From positions 287,597 through 351,596 of the forward strand of contig RQSC01000014.1 of the NCBI GenBank assembly GCA_013416795.1: DNA of 64,000 nt, read 5' to 3'. The stretch comes from Prasinococcaceae sp. CCMP 1430. Lineage: Eukaryota > Plantae > Prasinodermophyta. The notes below the pieces were generated by a model that made no database searches, was not told the origin of the DNA, and was given only the letters and a program-made list of their open reading frames with translations. Shown here one piece after another: positions 4,558 to 15,520 of this stretch (positions within the stretch are counted from its first letter, which is position 1; each line of letters begins with the position of its first letter). The position numbers and the translations under genes were made by a program.

Positions 4558-5952
4558 CTAAATCCGACACTCATAGTTGCCGCTGCTCTGCGTGAGGTAC
4601 CTCACCCACTTGGTGGGGGCGTAGCCGCTCTTCTCGAACACCTTGAGAAAGCGCACGCGCATGCCCGAGGAGGTGAACATCGGAATGGAGAAGGTCAGCT
4701 TGATGGGCGGTTTTTCCCACGCCTTGTCTGCGACGGTCGACAGCATTGACACTCCCATGTTGAAGGTGGCCTCTGTCATGCCCGGGAACTCGCTGATCTT
4801 CCACACCACCACGCATCGCGCCTTGTCGTACTTGGACTTCCCGGCGGTCTGCTCGGTCTTCACCGCGGACGTGGTCTTGGGCACGGGAATCTCTATGCGG
4901 ACGCTGTACCCCGCGAGGGCCGGCGGATAGTCCGCGCGGACCTTCACGGTCATCTCAGCGCGCGTGCGCCCCGGCTGGTGGTACGCCGGCACGACCTTGA
5001 AAGGCAGCTTCACCTGGCCACTTTCGGTGAGGCGATACTGCACCAGATCGAACTCGCCGTCGGGCGGCACGAACATGATCTCCTTGGTTGCCTCGAAGTG
5101 CTTCAGCCTGACACACTGGTGAAACTTGAGCGAGTCCAGTGCCACCTCGCGCTTGGAGCCGAGGTTGGCCACCGCCTGCGGCCGGCTGACCTCGCCTGGA
5201 CCGCCGACGCCCGAGGCGACGCCTCCGACACCCGCGCCGCCGCCGTACGCGGACGCATCCGACTGCTCCATCAGGATCTTGTCGTTCAAGCCGAGCTTGC
5301 ACTCGGGCATGCCCGAGAGCTGCGACTTCATCACGATCCTGCCACTGACCTCGCCAAAGAGCATTTCTCCGGACGGCGTCAGCAAAGCGGACACGTTCTC
5401 GATCGTGTCGAGGAACAGCTCGTTTTTCTTGTACGCGATGCCCTGCCGACGCCAGGCGACGGCACCTGTGACGTCGAGCGTCAGGTTCTTCTGCTTCTCG
5501 CGCAGCGCGAGTATCGCGCGCGGGTCCTTCGGCATCCCCTTCTCGAGAATGAAGTCCTTCAGCAAGTTGTACGAGGTCACCTGCGGGTACCCATAGTCCA
5601 TCGCCTCGTCGAGAATGGCGTATAGCAGGGTGTACCCGAGGCGGACCTTGTCAGAGTTCAGCACGCCTCCGAAGTACTGCCTGATCGTGTGCACGAGCGC
5701 ATTGAGGAACTCGAAGGCCATGAGCGAGTTGGCGTTGAGGCGGGTGCTGGCCACGATGAATATGTCACCCTCGCGCACGAACAGGAAGGAGCTCCCTGCG
5801 CGCGTGGCGATGGGGCACACCTCGGTCTCGCGCGTGCGGATGATGCGCTGTCCGAAGTCCACAAGCGCCAAGCGGCTCACGTCGCCGCGGAAGTCGCGCC
5901 ATGCGAGCAGCCGCCCCTGGTTCGCCTCCATCAGCGCAACGCACGACAACAT
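4558..5952 (-). CDS. AP2M: Adaptor complex medium (mu) subunit, AP-2 mu-like, intronless
   Basis: Motifs DEAMDYGYPQ, LTLDVTGAVAWRRQGIAYKKNELFLD, SGMPECKLGLNDK, FVPPDGEFDL and SGMRVRFLKVFEKSGY. First ATG is at 5952. Confidence 0.88.
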   Translation of the reverse strand: MLSCVALMEANQGRLLAWRDFRGDVSRLALVDFGQRIIRTRETEVCPIATRAGSSFLFVREGDIFIVASTRLNANSLMAFEFLNALVHTIRQYFGGVLNSDKVRLGYTLLYAILDEAMDYGYPQVTSYNLLKDFILEKGMPKDPRAILALREKQKNLTLDVTGAVAWRRQGIAYKKNELFLDTIENVSALLTPSGEMLFGEVSGRIVMKSQLSGMPECKLGLNDKILMEQSDASAYGGGAGVGGVASGVGGPGEVSRPQAVANLGSKREVALDSLKFHQCVRLKHFEATKEIMFVPPDGEFDLVQYRLTESGQVKLPFKVVPAYHQPGRTRAEMTVKVRADYPPALAGYSVRIEIPVPKTTSAVKTEQTAGKSKYDKARCVVVWKISEFPGMTEATFNMGVSMLSTVADKAWEKPPIKLTFSIPMFTSSGMRVRFLKVFEKSGYAPTKWVRYLTQSSGNYECRI

Positions 5953-6316
5953 GGCTGCCAACAGCCGCTGTTGCCGCGCGCCCTCGCAGTGTGTAGCAGG
6001 TGGCGCCTCGCGCGCCTCGCGTTTCGCAACGGCGGCCTAAAAAAGCGCCGCGGCGGCGGCGCGCGCGGCCGCGGCGCCCTACCCACTCGTGCGCGCCGCG
6101 AAGGCAAGGCAAGGCACCTCTATGTAGCCGCCCGGAGCGTGCGCGCGCCCACGCCGGTCAGTGTGACGCGCGCGCGTGATTTGGGTGTGTGTGTGGGGGG
6201 GGGGGGGCGCGCCCGCCAGCACCCCCGGACGGCAACACCCCTCGCATAGCATAATGTGTGTGCGAAAGTGTGTGCTTCGCAGATGATGAAATTAATCCAA
6301 TTGTTGTTTTCCAATG

Positions 6317-9300
6317 TCAGCGCTCGCGCGGCCCCCACGAGGTGATGACCTCGACGCACTCGTCGCGGGCCTCGGCCTTGAGCGCCCTGTCGCTGCCGCG
6401 CACCGAACCTCCGGTCCAGTCTTCGAGCGTGCCCCCTTCGTCGGCGTGCGCGAGCCACCTCTCGACGGCCTCCCGCCCGGCCTGCTTCAACTTCTTGCCA
6501 ATGACGCTCCTCATCAGAAAGGCGTGCCGGATCTCGTCGGTGAGCGGCGGCTTGAGGACGATGTCGTTTTCCTCGAGCGGCTCTATGATCCTCTCGTCCT
6601 GGAGCCACTGTGTGAGCTCATGAAAGAAGATTGGATGCTTGTCACACCAGTTGTGCTTGAAGATGACCTTGCCCGAGGCATCGGCGGCTTCCGCGATGTC
6701 CTGCCTGAGCTCGTTGAGGTCGAGCGAAGGCGCGCTGTCATTCTGCTCGTCGTCGTCGCCGACGTTCATGGCCAGCACGGAGAGCTCCTCCATGCACGCA
6801 GTCTCTACCTCGTCTACCAGCTTGGCGAACTTCTGCGGGTTGGACTTCTCGATGTCGGTAAGCGAGAGCCACCAGCCGAGCAAATTGCGGATCTTCGTGA
6901 GGGAGCGGTTGTACACGAGTAGCTTCTCGCCGAAGCGGCTCTCCTCAGCGACCGTGACGAGGCTCGACGCTACCGCCACGGACACGGCCACGTATAGGCG
7001 GGTCTGGCGGAAGACGGCGAGCACCGTCCCCATCCCACCCAGCACGTAGTTGAGCACGTTGAAGAGGGCGAGGTAGAAGGTTATCTGCTTTGCCTTGCGC
7101 TCGAAGTCCGCCACGATGGGGCCCAGGCGCAGCTCGATGTAATCCTCGGGACTGAGCGTGCTCACGCCGTTGTCGACGTCGCTCACGGCGCAGTTGGATT
7201 TTCGCACCACGTTGCCGCCCTTCGCGCTCAGCGCACCCTCGGCAACCACCGACGCCAGCACTTCCTGCTGGATCTTCTGCACGCTTCGGTCGAGCTCGGT
7301 GGCGCGGTCCGACACGGTGACGGCCGCATACTCGCCCGTGCGCGTACGCCACCGATAAATCTGCGAGCGGATGCGCTCCGCCGCCAGTTTGAGCACGGCG
7401 GCCTTCTTTTTCGCTCGCAGCTTCAGCGAAATCGCAGAGATCACCGCCAGCACGATGGGCGCTATGATGACGGCGTGCTCGAGCCAATCCTCCAAGGTCA
7501 CAGACCATCCCGTCGACGTCGCCTCGGCGAGCCCCGCGCCGCGGATGGCCTCGATTGTGCAGGCCACGGCGGTGATGACCACGCCGATGCTCAGGAAGCT
7601 GTTACGAAGCCACTTCGACTGACCCTTGTAGATGTCGGTAGCGTGCGAGTACTCGCCAAAGCGCTCCCACGCGAGCCGAACAGTGGGGTCGTCCGTGTTC
7701 TTCGACTTGAGCTGCTGCTCCTGCGCGAAGAAGAGCCGCTTGATCATCTGTGACGTTGTGCCGCCGTCCACCTCAGACAGCTCGATAAACTCAATGTTGG
7801 CCTCCTGCACGATCTCGGTGATGGCCGAGTCGTTCATGTACGTGTGCCCCGCCTGCCTCGCTTTGTAGAGGCGATCGGCCACACCACCCGAACCCTTGAT
7901 GCACACAAGTGGCCAGCCCTTGCGCACGCACTCCAGCGTCTCCATGAGCGCGGGCTGGGCGCCGTTGACCAGGAAGGCCACCGCGGGCAGCTGTCGGTCG
8001 GTTGCGTCGTCTCTCGCGATGGCATCAGCCAGGTCGAATCGGTACTTGGAAATCGCCGCCTCGTCATCGGTAGGCAACAGCACCACATGCGTGTGATCTG
8101 GCTGCAGCGGCAGGCGGTCCCTCTGCCCCGGGCGCACGTCACCCGGCCAAGTCATCTTCGGCTTGGCGTTGACGGCCACCAGCGGGACGCGGTACTCGCG
8201 GTCGCGGTTGGCATACCCGGCATAGCCCGCAGGGCCCACATCCCACCCGCCGGACATCACAACAGCGTGCACCTGCTCTGCGGCGGCCATGATGCCGCGA
8301 CTGTAGACCATCTGCAGCCGCGCGATGGTTTCCTCCGGCGAGATCCCGTCGGGCAGGCGCTGGCCTGGCAGCTCGCCAGCGACGAAGTCGTCGAGCGCCG
8401 ACGAGGCCCCGATGACCTTGATTAGGCCGTGCACGCCCGCATTCGTGTGCTGGTGCTCCGAGATGTAGGATGACAGTTTCAGCATTCTCTCCACCTCATC
8501 GGGATGCGTGCCCGGGTCGGGTTCCACGACGAAGCTGGCACGCGCGCCGAAGAGGGTGGGGTCCCATACGATTCTCTCCACTTTCTCCGTCTCGCCCACG
8601 TAAGACGGCACATCTGCAAAAAACGTGTCGACGGGCAGCGGCGGGACCATGGTCCCGTAGTCCGTGATGGCCACGTATTCCGCATTCTCGGAGGGGTCGA
8701 TGTCCGATGGCGGCGCCGAGGGCGGAGGACTCGCGAAGGACGCGAGCGAGGGAGGCGTAGCGGGCTGCGGCATCAGCGCGAGCGCGCGCGCGTGAGCGTG
8801 CGATGCGCACGCATTTGACCCCATGTCCGCTTCATCGCCCGAGTCGTAGAATGGCGGCGATGGCGGAAGCGAGGCCATGAGTGGCGGCGACGGCGCGGGG
8901 GAGGTCGCAAAGCCACCAACGTTCGGCGCGCCGCGCATCGAGGACGCCATCTTCTTGGACATGACCATCGAGGATGCCACCCCGGTGACCGTGGACGCCA
9001 CCATGGGGTCGCCGTCTCCATCGTAGAGCTTCATGTTGTGCGTGTTGCACAACCAGGCGATGTAGATCTCAAAGAACTCGGGATATTTGCCCATCCACAC
9101 CTTGCCCCAGGCGACACTACCCTCGGACGTGTTCGAGCTCACATCTGCCATGAACTCGTCCAAGTTGAAGTTCAGCTCACCATTCGTGCCCTCCGTCTCG
9201 ACCATGGGCGCGCCTGGGTTCGTTGAGCGCCGCTGGTTGGACATCGCGCGTTCGCACACGCGCACGAGCTTAGAGAACTTCTGCGGGTTGGCCTGCTCGA

Positions 9301-11979
9301 TGGCCGTGCGCGAGCGCCACCAGCCAATCACCTCGAGCATCTTTCCGCTGGCGCGGTTAGCGGCAATGATCTTGGGCTCGTAACCAAGAGACTCGGTGAG
9401 CGTGAGCAGCGCGCTCGACACTGCCGTCGTGACGGCAATGTAGATATTCAGGCCGAAGATCGCGAACGCCGTACCCGACGCTGACATGAGGATCACTAGA
9501 ATGGACATGGCCTTGCTTGCACTGTCCATCATGTTCGCGCTCGTCTGGTACGTGAGCATGGCGGGCTCCGCGCGCATCTTGATGTACGAGTCCGGTGCCA
9601 GCACGCTGAAGCCGTCATCATCCTCGCTCACGCGGTAGTCTGTGTTGCGCAATGCCGTGAGGACCGAGCGGTCGAGAGCAACCTCGCCGACGAGCGTGCT
9701 TTGCAGACGATCGGTGATAATCTGATAACGCTCCGCCAGGATGGCATCGCATTTCTGCGCTGCCACGAAGGCCTCGACGCGCGAGCGATAGGTGTAAAGT
9801 TCCTTGCGCATGGCCTGGGCTGCCGCCGTGAGGATTTTTGCCTTCAGCCCATACTGGAACTTTTGGTTGATGGACACCAGAATTGTGTTGGCGATGGGGG
9901 TGAAGAAGATTATGTGGTCCATGGTGTCGGCGTCATGTGCGGACACGCGCGCGTACACCGAGTCGTTGCGCACCGATACAAGCACCACGATAAACACGGC
10001 GAGGAGCTGGATAGACGCGTACATGTACCAATAGATCTTTCCGAGTCTCGCTGAGTTGCTCTCGAAGATAGCGATGGCCTGATGGACCATCACGGACGCG
10101 CCGGTGGCGTCCTCTACGGGTGGGAGCCGCACGCGCCCATCATCGCCATCGCCGTCGCCCATGAGCGCCGCTCTCACGCCCTTTGCTCTCTTTTGGTCAC
10201 CCCCCAACTTCTCGTCCTTGTCTTCCTTCCCCGGTCCCGCCCCCCTGGCCAGCATGGTCTTGAATAACCGCTCCAGCATCGCCTGTAAAATCTTGCCGTC
10301 GGCGTCGGCTATGCTGATCACTTCAATCACTGCCGATCGAACGATCTCCATGAGCTGACGGAGGCATGCACGCGCGGGTTGCAGGTGCGAGTGCGGGCGC
10401 ACGGAGAATGAGATGGGAGGGCATTTTTGAGGGCGGGGGTTCGGCGACGGCTGTCAGTGGGCTGGATCGGGCGAGCACGGCGCACGAGCGAGCGAGCGCT
10501 GCGCGCTCGCGTGCACGCGTGCAGGATCGCGCGCAAATTGCGCGCGGGTGCGTTCGTTGCTCTCACCTTGGGATTGGGCACGAAGTGGTTGGCGTTCTCC
10601 TTCTGCGAGGCCCAAGCAATGGCGTCCGCTGCGCCACCCGTTCCCTTCACGATCACCAGCGGCCACCCACGCCTCACGCACGCAAGAGTCTCCTCGATGG
10701 CGGCCTCGGCACCGCTCACAAGCACACCCACCACAGGCAGTGGACCCGCGCCACGCGCGTTGCGGGCGAGCACGGCCTCAATCACGCGAAAACGCAGCTG
10801 CCGTGCCCCCACCTCGTCGTCCGTGGCGGCCATAACCACGTGCGAGTGGCCTGGGTGCACGCCGAGGCGCAGCTCGCGGCCTTTTGCCCCGTGGTTTGGC
10901 CTCGGGTCGCCCGGCCACGTGGCGCGTGACATGGGCACCACGCCGACCACGGGCATCTTGTTGCCCCGGTCCATGGCGGCACGGCCCATGTAGGCCACCG
11001 GCCCGCGGTCGATGCCCGCCGTGAAGACAGCCGCGTGCACCGACTCGGCCGCGCGCGCGAGCCCGCGGGAGAACATGAGAGACAGTCTCGAGCTCGCCTC
11101 CGTCTTGGTCACAGCTGCGGTCAGCCCGCCGAAGTGCTCAACGTAATTGGGGTCGCGTGCCACGCGGCCGTCGTGCTCGGCAATCTGCCTGTCGAGCAGG
11201 TCCGAGTCACCGATGACGGTGATGACACCTTGCACACCCGCGGTCGAGCCCTGCTCCTGCCGTATGAAGCCGCGCAGATCGAGCGTGGCGGCCACGCTCT
11301 CCGCAGTGTCGCTGTCGCACACGGCCACCGCCAGGCTGGTGCGCATTTCCATGTCTTTCGGCTGCCAGCGAATCTTTGATGTCGGCAGCAGCGGCGATGG
11401 TGCTGCGGCCGCGCGCGCCGGCGCAACGGTGCTGCCGGCATCGTATCCCGCGCTGTTGCTGTCGTCAGCGCCCTTGCCTTCTTCGTCAGCGACGCCTTCG
11501 GGATTCACCCGGCGTGAAAACAACTTGCTGAGAAGCCTGGGGACAGGCTTTTGGGGGGATGAGGGCGCTGGCGTGGGGTCGGCGCCGGCTTGAGTGTCGA
11601 ATGGCGTCGGCGGTGGCAGCGCTGATGCATCGACGTCCACGCCGGCAGCGGCGGCGGCATCGAGTGGGTCAGTACGTGCAGCCGAGCCCACGTCGGTAGC
11701 GCTCCCTCCCTTCTCTATAGGAGCTCCATCGATCCGGCTTTCCACAAGATATCCAGGCTCCACTCCGGCCTCTTTAGCTGCATGCAACTCGTGCGCAACC
11801 TCCTCCGCAACAGGTGCGACGCCTCCCTCGTCCATGCCTGGCGCGTCGACGGCAGCGTCGGGATCGGCGCGGCTAATAGATAGGTTCGCAGATTCCGTTG
11901 AAAGGGGTGCGACGCCCTCCGCGTCCACGCGCGGTACGTCTGCCGCACTCTCGGTGGGAAGCCCGCCGCCTCCCGGCAT
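6317..11979 (-). CDS. ~1816-aa membrane protein with duplicated [SLOG/LSDAT - SLATT(DUF4231-like) - SLATT - helical tail] modules; join(complement 10567..11979, 6317..10354)
   Basis: Intron 10355-10566 (GTGAGA...ACTGAC...TCAG, phase 0) joins the two long ORFs as PNPK|LMEIVR. There are two SLOG-like domains (GWPLVIVKGTGGAAD and GWPLVCIKGSGGVAD) and four hydrophobic 2-TM hairpins with LYTYRSRV/IYRWRTRTGEY and LAPDSYIKMR/LSPEDYIELR motifs. Confidence 0.82.
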
Positions 11980-12365
11980 GTCGGTGGCTGCGGCACTGCG
12001 GTCAATTGAGAGCGCCAACAGGGCTCGATTCCTGCCCTTGATGCTTTCCCAGTGGCGCTGGCTGCGCAAGTACGCCAGGTTGAAGAGCGGGACTTGGCGC
12101 GTGCGTGCGAGCACGCGCTAAAACGGCGCTGGTCCCTCGGGCGGCGGGGTCCGGAGGGCGGGTGGGTGTGGAGGACGCGCGCGCGGGGTGGGTGGGGGAT
12201 GGGTGAGGGAGCGGCGCGCCTGCACTCTTTTCCCCAACGGTCGCGCCGCGCGCCGCGCCGGCGGGCGCCGGCGCGCCCCCCCGGGTTCGAAAATCGCGCC
12301 GCGCCAGGTTTACTGTAGGGTCCAGACTTTGCGGGTTGTGGGAGGGGATGCGGCCGTGCGCCCGC

Positions 12366-12395: not shown

Positions 12396-12602
12396 GCGGG
12401 TGCCGTGCCATGCCATCGCCACATGCCACGAGCGCGCGGCCGCGCTGCGCCGGACGCACGTCTTGGGTGCGGCCGTGCGGTGAGGTGAGGGGTGGGCACA
12501 GAGGGATGCGGGGGCGCCTGCGTGTGCTAGTACTATGTAATGAACAGTGCTTTAAAGGCCCCCTGTGATGGAGACAACTGGAGAGCACGGCCGGCAATGC
12601 GC

Positions 12603-15520
<2,918 letters not shown>

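Follow-up and report, generated by a model that had tools for sequence, protein, structure and literature searches.

Does a green alga possess a membrane protein of the type that bacteria place beside nucleotide-signalling genes, and what might it do in such a cell? This question is raised by a minus-strand gene in a 64,000-nucleotide (nt) stretch of the genome of Prasinococcaceae sp. CCMP 1430 (contig RQSC01000014.1, positions 287,597 to 351,596), which is called the window in the following. A reading of the sequence alone, made without database searches, had proposed that the gene encodes two copies of a module with an LSDAT-type SLOG domain and SLATT membrane domains. SLOG, SLATT and LSDAT domains, their fusion in bacteria and its predicted role were reportedly described by Burroughs et al. 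in 2015, as other papers cite that work. The analysis showed that the architecture SLOG(LSDAT)-SLATT-SLATT, present twice and lacking a TRP pore, is near certain. Each of the two homologous modules (N and C) consists of an LSDAT-type SLOG domain followed by four transmembrane (TM) helices, namely a DUF4231-like hairpin and a SLATT_1 hairpin.

The gene is covered by two minus-strand open reading frames (ORFs) of 1361 amino acids (aa; 6317..10402) and 595 aa (10327..12114), which overlap at 10327-10402. Excision of 212 nt (10566..10355), with the donor AAG/GTGAGA at 10567/10566 and the acceptor CAG ending at 10355, fuses the two frames in phase 0; the unspliced frame of exon 1 runs into a stop at 10327. 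A two-exon gene results that extends from the ATG at 11979 to the stop codon at 6317-6319 and has a product of exactly 1816 aa, the length that had been estimated before. The splice joint is supported indirectly. The intronless relative P0002 (63% identical), which is encoded by a single unbroken 5.3-kb ORF on contigs from marine metagenomes, among them a TARA scaffold, carries NPK/LMEIV exactly at the predicted joint. In a second strain (run X4) two 2-nt deletions (at 10426 and 10540) and one substitution lie within the intron, and the exons contain substitutions only. In addition, module 2 holds colinear, uninterrupted sequence across the region that matches the intron site. Every database protein from the same species (P0001 and its cluster) reads across the intron, and therefore these proteins are regarded as DNA-derived mispredictions. 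The intron is in frame in some public assemblies, for which read-through proteins of 1931 aa and 1677 aa were predicted (P0001, P0155), and it shifts the frame in other public assemblies and in the window. A sole "joint" in run X1 (10160 to 11046, side 20, AT..CT) was rejected as spurious; it stemmed from a contig with 22-nt matches.

It had to be considered whether the locus consists of split genes or split transcripts, or whether it is a decaying relic or an artefact of assembly or contamination. The read-through of the DNA-derived database proteins would be compatible with this, as would the result that no transcript spanning the gene was found in the same-species runs examined. Nevertheless, this explanation is extremely improbable, because exon 2 stays open over 4 kb and holds TM block 1, the linker and module 2 in a single frame, five other clusters keep a continuous tandem ORF, and the family-invariant residues are kept in both halves. 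The same-strand HSP90 and clathrin-adaptor neighbours together with the GT-AG intron also argue against it, and so does a 6.4-kb contig of run X1, possibly the source sample, which spans the whole gene stretch with zero differences.

The SLOG domains were identified with Pfam models. LSDAT_prok (PF18171) matched copy 1 with 85.7 bits (E 3.2e-24) and copy 2 with 91.2 bits (E 6.8e-26) at a cut-off of 25.4, and LSDAT_euk (PF18139) matched copy 1 with 55.3 bits (E 8.7e-15) and copy 2 with 24.5 bits, just below its cut-off of 25.7. Of the columns conserved to 85% or more among 74 bacterial relatives, almost all are present in both copies (RG..A, GG...G....G, H.H, G..E..L..VR...P....G.G..AD and EI); in SLOG-1 these include G322, G326, G332, H378, H380, G423, E430, R436, G446, G448, A451, D452 and E474. 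An AlphaFold2 model of module C was built from a 96-row alignment (mean predicted local distance difference test, pLDDT, 89; predicted template-modelling score, pTM, 0.79), and SLOG-1 is represented by it via its 40% identity to SLOG-2. The best 50 Foldseek matches listed for this model were all TRPM channels. With VIA-align, SLOG-2 was superimposed on the choanoflagellate TRPM2 chanzyme (8sr9) with a Z of 25.3 and a root-mean-square deviation (rmsd) of 3.3 A over 269 residues, on human TRPM2 (8e6t) with a Z of 24.0, and on a Tetrahymena ciliary-tip LSDAT protein with a Z of 23.4. The low-rmsd superpositions onto TRPM chains were mostly limited to model residues 1-300. The family profile matched residues 143-373 of human TRPM2 (E 6e-31). 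SLOG-2 is thus predicted by the model to have the bilobed Rossmann-like fold of TRPM MHR1/2, and the LSDAT-type identity that had been proposed for both SLOG domains was verified by the two LSDAT_prok scores and by the structural similarity.

For the membrane part, Pfam SLATT_1 (PF18181) yielded 61.7 bits in two stretches against a cut-off of 26.3 (E 8.7e-17 for TM block 1), and NCBIfam SLATT_1 (NF033634) yielded 48.6 bits for module N and 49.1 bits for module C against a cut-off of 41. Pfam DUF4231 (PF14015) reached 15.6 bits, below its cut-off of 24.7, so that the first hairpin is only weakly DUF4231-like by sequence. Hydropathy analysis according to Kyte and Doolittle with a threshold of 1.5 revealed seven of the eight proposed helices (aa 581-599, 753-771, 772-790, 1390-1408, 1432-1450, 1568-1586 and 1589-1607). 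The eight helices of the sequence-only reading were therefore recovered with the exception of the second, which was marginal. Because there are four helices per module, both SLOG domains should lie on the same side of the membrane. The AlphaFold2 model of the 4-TM block (pLDDT 91) has long paired helices. Among 48,161 solved chains nothing matched it specifically; the highest Z, 9.2, was obtained with generic helical hairpins and is too low to carry meaning for helical proteins. In the ESM Atlas it matched clusters with DUF4231 and SLATT_1, with or without LSDAT_prok (template-modelling scores of 0.81 and 0.80 over 306-318 residues). The residues R661/R1474, D717/D1532, Y728/Y1543, R732/R1547, N804/N1620, the WW pair 816-817/1632-1633 and two Glu are retained in the two TM blocks, and judged by these positions and by the SLOG columns neither half looks degenerate. 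Both the SLATT assignment and the bacterial-type architecture, which had been claimed to lack a six-TM TRP pore, are thus in line with the data, in that SLATT_1 exceeded the cut-off in both modules and the TM block resembled DUF4231/SLATT_1 models only. Membership of the TRPM family was rejected, as the protein has no TRP pore; MHR3/4, the six-TM pore and the TRP helix are absent.

The SLOG superfamily includes LOG phosphoribohydrolases. The SLOG domains could therefore be LOG-like enzymes that process or hydrolyse nucleotides, in which case the TM helices would be a mere anchor and there would be no gated pore. In a profile search of solved structures the sole non-TRPM chain was 1rcu, a 195-aa conserved hypothetical protein (E 6.5e-7), which may also be counted in favour of an enzyme. 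In contrast, the strong sequence and structure matches were all to the non-catalytic, ligand-binding MHR1/2 of TRPM proteins, and conservation in the TM part equals that in the SLOG part and includes polar and aromatic residues that do not vary, which would not be expected for an anchor. An enzymatic function of this kind is thus very unlikely.

The two halves of the protein were compared with each other. Identity amounts to 40% between the SLOG halves (259 aa, E 1e-50) and to 29% between the TM halves (299 aa, E 3e-35), and thus the duplication is far beyond chance. A single-module hidden Markov model (HMM) of 630 positions was built from 98 single-module, presumably bacterial, relatives. It matched module N at aa 290-502 and 562-846 and module C at aa 1114-1663, and the modules of the window cover its positions from about 58 to 561. 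The sequence-only reading fared well in this respect. Its two module copies of about 700 aa were borne out by both half-to-half alignments, its domain coordinates lay within about 30 aa of the HMM boundaries, and all four motif pairs that it had quoted are found in the translations. The features of the gene are compiled in Table 1. The motif that follows SLATT_1 in each eukaryotic module comprises an acidic L.L.EF..D stretch and then W..K(Y/H)P.FF....WL; it is not in the bacterial consensus and had no Pfam match.

Table 1. Features of the tandem SLOG-SLATT gene (positions in the window; all on the minus strand).
Feature	Position	Strand	Basis
Coding exon 1, aa 1-471: low-complexity N-terminus and most of SLOG-1	10567..11979	-	First in-frame ATG, donor
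Spliceosomal intron, 212 nt, GT...AG, phase 0	10355..10566	-	Frame joining; P0002 junction; X4 indels
Coding exon 2, aa 472-1816 and stop: end of SLOG-1, TM block 1, linker, SLOG-2, TM block 2, tail	6317..10354	-	Uninterrupted ORF
N-terminal region, about 235 aa, Ala/Pro/Asp/Gly/Ser-rich, poorly conserved	11275..11979	-	Composition; no Pfam match; no alignment to the P0002 N-terminus
SLOG-1 (LSDAT type), aa ~240-505, split by the intron	10253..11262	-	Pfam; 40% identity to SLOG-2; conserved columns
TM block 1, aa ~558-848: DUF4231-like 2-TM and SLATT_1 2-TM hairpins	9224..10096	-	Pfam, NCBIfam, hydropathy, single-module HMM
Motif after SLATT_1, copy 1, eukaryote-specific, conserved	9050..9178	-	Aligns with copy 2; in P0002, P0003, P0004
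Inter-module linker, about 150 aa, Pro/Ala/Ser-rich	8591..9049	-	Composition; no domain match
SLOG-2 (LSDAT type), aa ~1060-1354	7706..8590	-	Pfam; AlphaFold2 model; TRPM superposition
TM block 2, aa ~1355-1673: DUF4231-like and SLATT_1 hairpins	6749..7705	-	NCBIfam, hydropathy, AlphaFold2 model, ESM Atlas
Motif after SLATT_1, copy 2, eukaryote-specific, conserved	6602..6724	-	Aligns with copy 1; low-confidence in the model
C-terminal charged tail	6320..6601	-	Translation, composition; no domain match

An exhaustive HMMER search with module C retrieved 1561 representatives at E <= 1e-3 and 131 at E <= 1e-30, and the best 150 matches were mostly single modules of about 550-750 aa. A scan by pattern that covered a single genome for each bacterial species gave 508 loci, among which Acidobacteriota, Chitinophagaceae and further Bacteroidota, giant sulfur bacteria, Myxococcota, Chloroflexota and Verrucomicrobiota are strongly represented and some cyanobacteria occur. 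Tandem proteins formed six clusters, those of the window species, P0002, P0190, P0191, P0003/P0179 and the Cymbomonas protein KAK3285041; of the five clusters outside the window species one is from Cymbomonas and the rest are from metagenomes or public assemblies. Among the named relatives, those of the green alga Cymbomonas tetramitiformis, which has at least three related genes, are the closest. The distribution of the eukaryotic tandem proteins is patchy and their branches are long. The modules are 71-74% identical to those of P0002, compared with 63% for the whole proteins, which suggests constraint on both halves. In P0011, P0132 and P0150, which are about 1000-1080 aa long, a pair of SLOG domains precedes a single 4-TM block, representing an independent duplication of the sensor alone. 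They give a hint that the pairing of SLOG domains matters.

In maximum-likelihood trees all eukaryotic modules were united in a clade (100/100), with a long branch between them and every bacterium sampled. The N-modules clustered together (94/93; 99/96 without Cymbomonas), and the C-module of the window protein grouped with the C-modules of P0002, P0190 and P0179. When the N- and C-modules of the window lineage were held together, the constraint was rejected in the approximately unbiased (AU) test (delta log-likelihood 79, p-AU 3e-16, with groups defined after inspection of the tree). A recent, lineage-specific duplication was thus rejected, and it follows from this result and from the grouping of N with N that the duplication predates the split of the window lineage and the P0179 organism. 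The same constraint was not rejected for Cymbomonas (p-AU 0.107), and the duplication may or may not be shared with this alga. The novelty in green algae that had been assumed at the outset was roughly right. However, the ESM Atlas contains DUF4231/SLATT_1 clusters, some of them with LSDAT_prok, that are 50-100% eukaryotic with haptophytes as the commonest phylum and proteins of about 1000 aa; therefore, eukaryotic SLATT proteins are not confined to green algae. According to a preprint, the SLATT gene EMIHUDRAFT_256646 of Gephyrocapsa huxleyi is regulated in opposite directions in virus infection with and without a bacterial quinolone.

The genomic context showed that the gene truly belongs to the nuclear genome of a green alga. 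An HSP90 gene lies upstream (12603-14957) and a gene for a clathrin-adaptor medium (mu) subunit (AP-mu) directly downstream (4558-5961), so that three genes follow one another on the minus strand with spacers of about 350-620 nt. The neighbours of an orthologue are GCN1, histone deacetylase (HDAC) and EF-hand genes, and other relatives lie among fragmented ORFs, which suggests intron-split genes. Bacterial contamination was ruled out because of the intron, the HSP90 and AP-mu neighbours and the occurrence of relatives on eukaryote-like contigs. The HSP90 gene has an N-terminal extension of about 145 aa and might encode an organellar or endoplasmic reticulum (ER) form. An 811-aa ORF on the opposite strand (12540-14975, plus) had no Pfam match and is probably an artefact of high GC content.

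To characterize the context of the bacterial relatives, the 80 best-matching single-module loci were surveyed, the flanking ORFs were clustered and representatives were annotated; nine of the loci had less than 1 kb of downstream sequence. A TIR HMM built from annotated neighbours detected flanking TIR ORFs at 21 of the 80 loci; about 14 of them lie immediately downstream on the same strand and encode TIR-WD40 or TIR-F5/8C proteins. The recurrent same-strand downstream neighbour was a TIR_2-WD40 fusion (L008, L018, L036, L042, L044, L074, L076, L080). The TIR-WD40 proteins have 550-1770 aa and are encoded downstream of the SLOG-4TM match, which lies at about 6001-7900 of the loci, with several TIR copies in L008 and L018; in PADLOC, the TIR-WD40 protein had a strong match to HEAT-ARM_XIII over the repeats and weaker matches to Aga_TIR and ThsB. 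A second type of neighbour combines TIR with a NADase-translocation/F5/8-type-C domain. The annotated example is that of L069, located upstream and on the other strand, and L041, L048 and L073 contain ORFs similar to it. Three loci of the Thiomargarita/Thiotrichales type (L010, L014, L016) have an NTP_transferase gene upstream of the SLOG-4TM gene and a gene for a GGDEF diguanylate cyclase downstream of it, which may be a different partner for a nucleotide signal. A gene for a DAO-type FAD oxidoreductase lies directly upstream in nine Pyrinomonadaceae/Blastocatellia loci (L004, L006, L051, L053, L061, L064, L068, L072, L002), and this may be simple synteny among related genomes.

In Thoeris systems, TIR products switch on effectors that contain SLOG in type I and SLATT in type VII (with canonical cyclic ADP-ribose, cADPR), and judged by the flank survey the bacterial loci have this layout. 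"SLOG and 4TM" has been listed in a 2025 preprint as a candidate Thoeris effector beside TIR (10.64898/2025.12.03.692087), and the single-module bacterial relatives probably belong to this category.

The putative ligand pocket was mapped by relating a TRPM2 profile alignment to the family alignment. In MHR1/2 of human TRPM2 (hsTRPM2), Y295 clamps ADP-ribose (ADPR), the phosphates of which are in contact with R358 as well as with the N-terminal end of helix alpha7, and the adenosine ribose of which is contacted by R302 (PMC6759353). The Gly-rich loops, among them GSGGxAD, are retained in both SLOG copies. The algal GSGG/GTGG loop aligns with GSGR358VAD of hsTRPM2; thus the loop is kept and position 358 is Gly. 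The column that maps to R302 is occupied by Arg in 10 of 11 algal modules, and by Met, Leu or Ile in bacteria. Based on these positions, a phosphate-bearing nucleotide is a plausible ligand of the algal SLOG domains, and the ligand probably differs between the algal and the bacterial proteins.

Taken together, the following mechanism is proposed. Each cytosolic SLOG domain would bind a phosphate-bearing nucleotide derived from NAD (ADPR or a cyclic or modified form of it), binding would alter the packing or the oligomerisation of the SLATT hairpins, and the altered hairpins would open a path that conducts ions or breaches the membrane. Pore formation or membrane permeabilisation by SLATT domains is a prediction for the family. 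Due to the covalent duplication one chain would carry two sensors and about eight TM helices, and the idea of the sequence-only reading that the two halves might form a pre-assembled pseudo-dimer is reasonable. The most likely role would be that of a threshold-type effector in defence or in regulated cell death, derived from a bacterial Thoeris-like system of TIR and SLOG-4TM. For the gating mechanism and this role together a probability of about 0.45 is estimated.

Several observations weigh against this proposal. A link to NAD-derived signalling had been claimed from the start. It gains support from the TIR neighbours of the bacterial relatives, but a TIR or other signal-generating gene was absent from the flanks of the algal gene and of its orthologue. 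No PADLOC model matched the algal modules or the bacterial relatives. Two tested operons of TIR and "SLOG and 4TM", possibly of the same family, conferred no defence in E. coli (Table S2, 10.64898/2025.12.03.692087). In the pocket, the algal modules lack the bacterial WGxE motif, the Trp of which maps to Y295, and the Arg equivalent to R358 is missing. The second TM helix of module N (aa ~615-633) peaked at only 1.32, although its counterpart in the alignment, TM6 of module C, is strong. At the transcript level, the spliced joint was not found in the same-species sequencing runs examined, none of which is recorded as RNA. Two small runs of the same species label that were guessed to be RNA contained almost nothing of the gene, and the matches in X6 were spurious and had 17-19 nt. 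Finally, the age and the orthology of the N and C halves and their housekeeping surroundings would fit a conserved channel of physiological function equally well.

This last point leads to a different role for the same nucleotide-gated SLATT conductance, namely in housekeeping or signalling. The protein would then be an ion channel that responds to an ADPR-type second messenger in stress or Ca2+ signalling, a functional analogue of TRPM2 outside the TRP family, rather than an effector of immunity or suicide. Such a role is favoured by the conserved, old tandem form, with the N-modules of different taxa grouping together and lineage-specific duplication rejected, and by the housekeeping neighbours with no adjoining TIR gene. 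It would also fit that the algal pocket differs from the bacterial one and has Arg at the R302-equivalent column, and that a conserved, eukaryote-specific tail motif was added to each module. On the other hand, both the SLATT domains and the relatives in bacteria are linked to conflict systems, and the patchy distribution in eukaryotes, the long branches and the multiple genes of Cymbomonas also speak against this role. The within-species differences point in the same direction, in that 8 of 17 substitutions between strains were non-synonymous and 9 synonymous, with 3 of the 8 located in the inter-module linker; as they stem from low-depth contigs, this pattern is weak evidence on function. 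A purely physiological role is considered rather unlikely, and an effector of defence or regulated death is the preferred explanation.

A more far-reaching interpretation, which is unlikely at present, would be that the protein represents a second, TRP-independent class of eukaryotic channels gated by ADPR-type nucleotides, which arose from the bacterial LSDAT-SLATT stock behind TRPM MHR1/2 and acts as effector of a TIR-like, NAD-derived immune or death signal in early-branching green algae. If this were true, a Thoeris-style pathway would have survived in Viridiplantae. If the protein were only a housekeeping channel, it would be the first eukaryotic protein outside the TRP family shown to use an LSDAT sensor. 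No description of the tandem eukaryotic protein was found in the literature searched. What appears to be new is an intron-bearing, anciently tandem-duplicated eukaryotic form in early-branching green algae, with an altered pocket that has a TRPM2-like Arg and with additional tail motifs. It links bacterial SLOG/SLATT conflict systems with adjoining TIR genes, the ADPR-sensing N-terminus of animal TRPM channels, and the machinery for cell-autonomous immunity or death in marine picoalgae, which is almost unknown. The gene is compact, nearly intronless and apparently intact, and thus it is a candidate for asking whether algae of the green lineage gate a membrane effector with NAD-derived nucleotides. 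It is also a candidate for learning which ligand LSDAT domains bind outside of TRPM and how SLATT hairpins act, and the old tandem duplication offers a natural "concatemer" for counting the modules per functional unit.

The comparison with known systems places the protein between several of them. With TRPM2 it shares the LSDAT-type SLOG domain, including the Gly-rich loop and the Arg at the R302-equivalent column. In contrast to TRPM channels, it lacks MHR3/4, the six-TM TRP pore, the TRP helix and NUDT9H, has two SLATT-type hairpins per module, carries the sensor twice per chain, and has Gly at position 358. In type I Thoeris, the SLOG domain of ThsA (SIR2-SLOG) reads an ADPR derivative made by TIR, and ThsA kills by NAD depletion and has no membrane domain. 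In Thoeris of type VII, ThsH represents a SLATT membrane effector that is activated by cADPR, and it carries no SLOG annotation in the preprint. The bacterial relatives of the algal protein combine the SLOG and SLATT elements beside a TIR gene. The algal gene differs from Thoeris in that it has no TIR neighbour and matches no Thoeris model of PADLOC.

Among eukaryotes, the tandem protein KAK3285041.1 of Cymbomonas has the same SLOG-4TM-SLOG-4TM order, and its N- and C-modules fall into the same eukaryotic clade; KAK3234247.1 and KAK3279022.1 are partial and comprise a single module. The Cymbomonas proteins are 31-33% identical to the window protein and are annotated as hypothetical. In architecture the protein resembles the bacterial LSDAT_prok-DUF4231-SLATT_1 proteins (e.g., P0005, "SLATT domain-containing protein" of Aquabacterium sp. 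OR-4), which have the same domain order, the same length per module and the same predicted TM fold, and which share RG..A, GG...G, H.H, G.G..AD, DDG.S.L.P..Y...R, YN and WW with the algal modules. The bacterial proteins have one module and the WGxE motif, and their genes are often followed by a TIR-WD40 or a TIR-F5/8C gene. The algal protein, in contrast, has no adjoining TIR gene, and it is distinguished by its tandem duplication, the linker of about 150 aa, the intron, the tail motifs and its position in a long-branch clade of its own.

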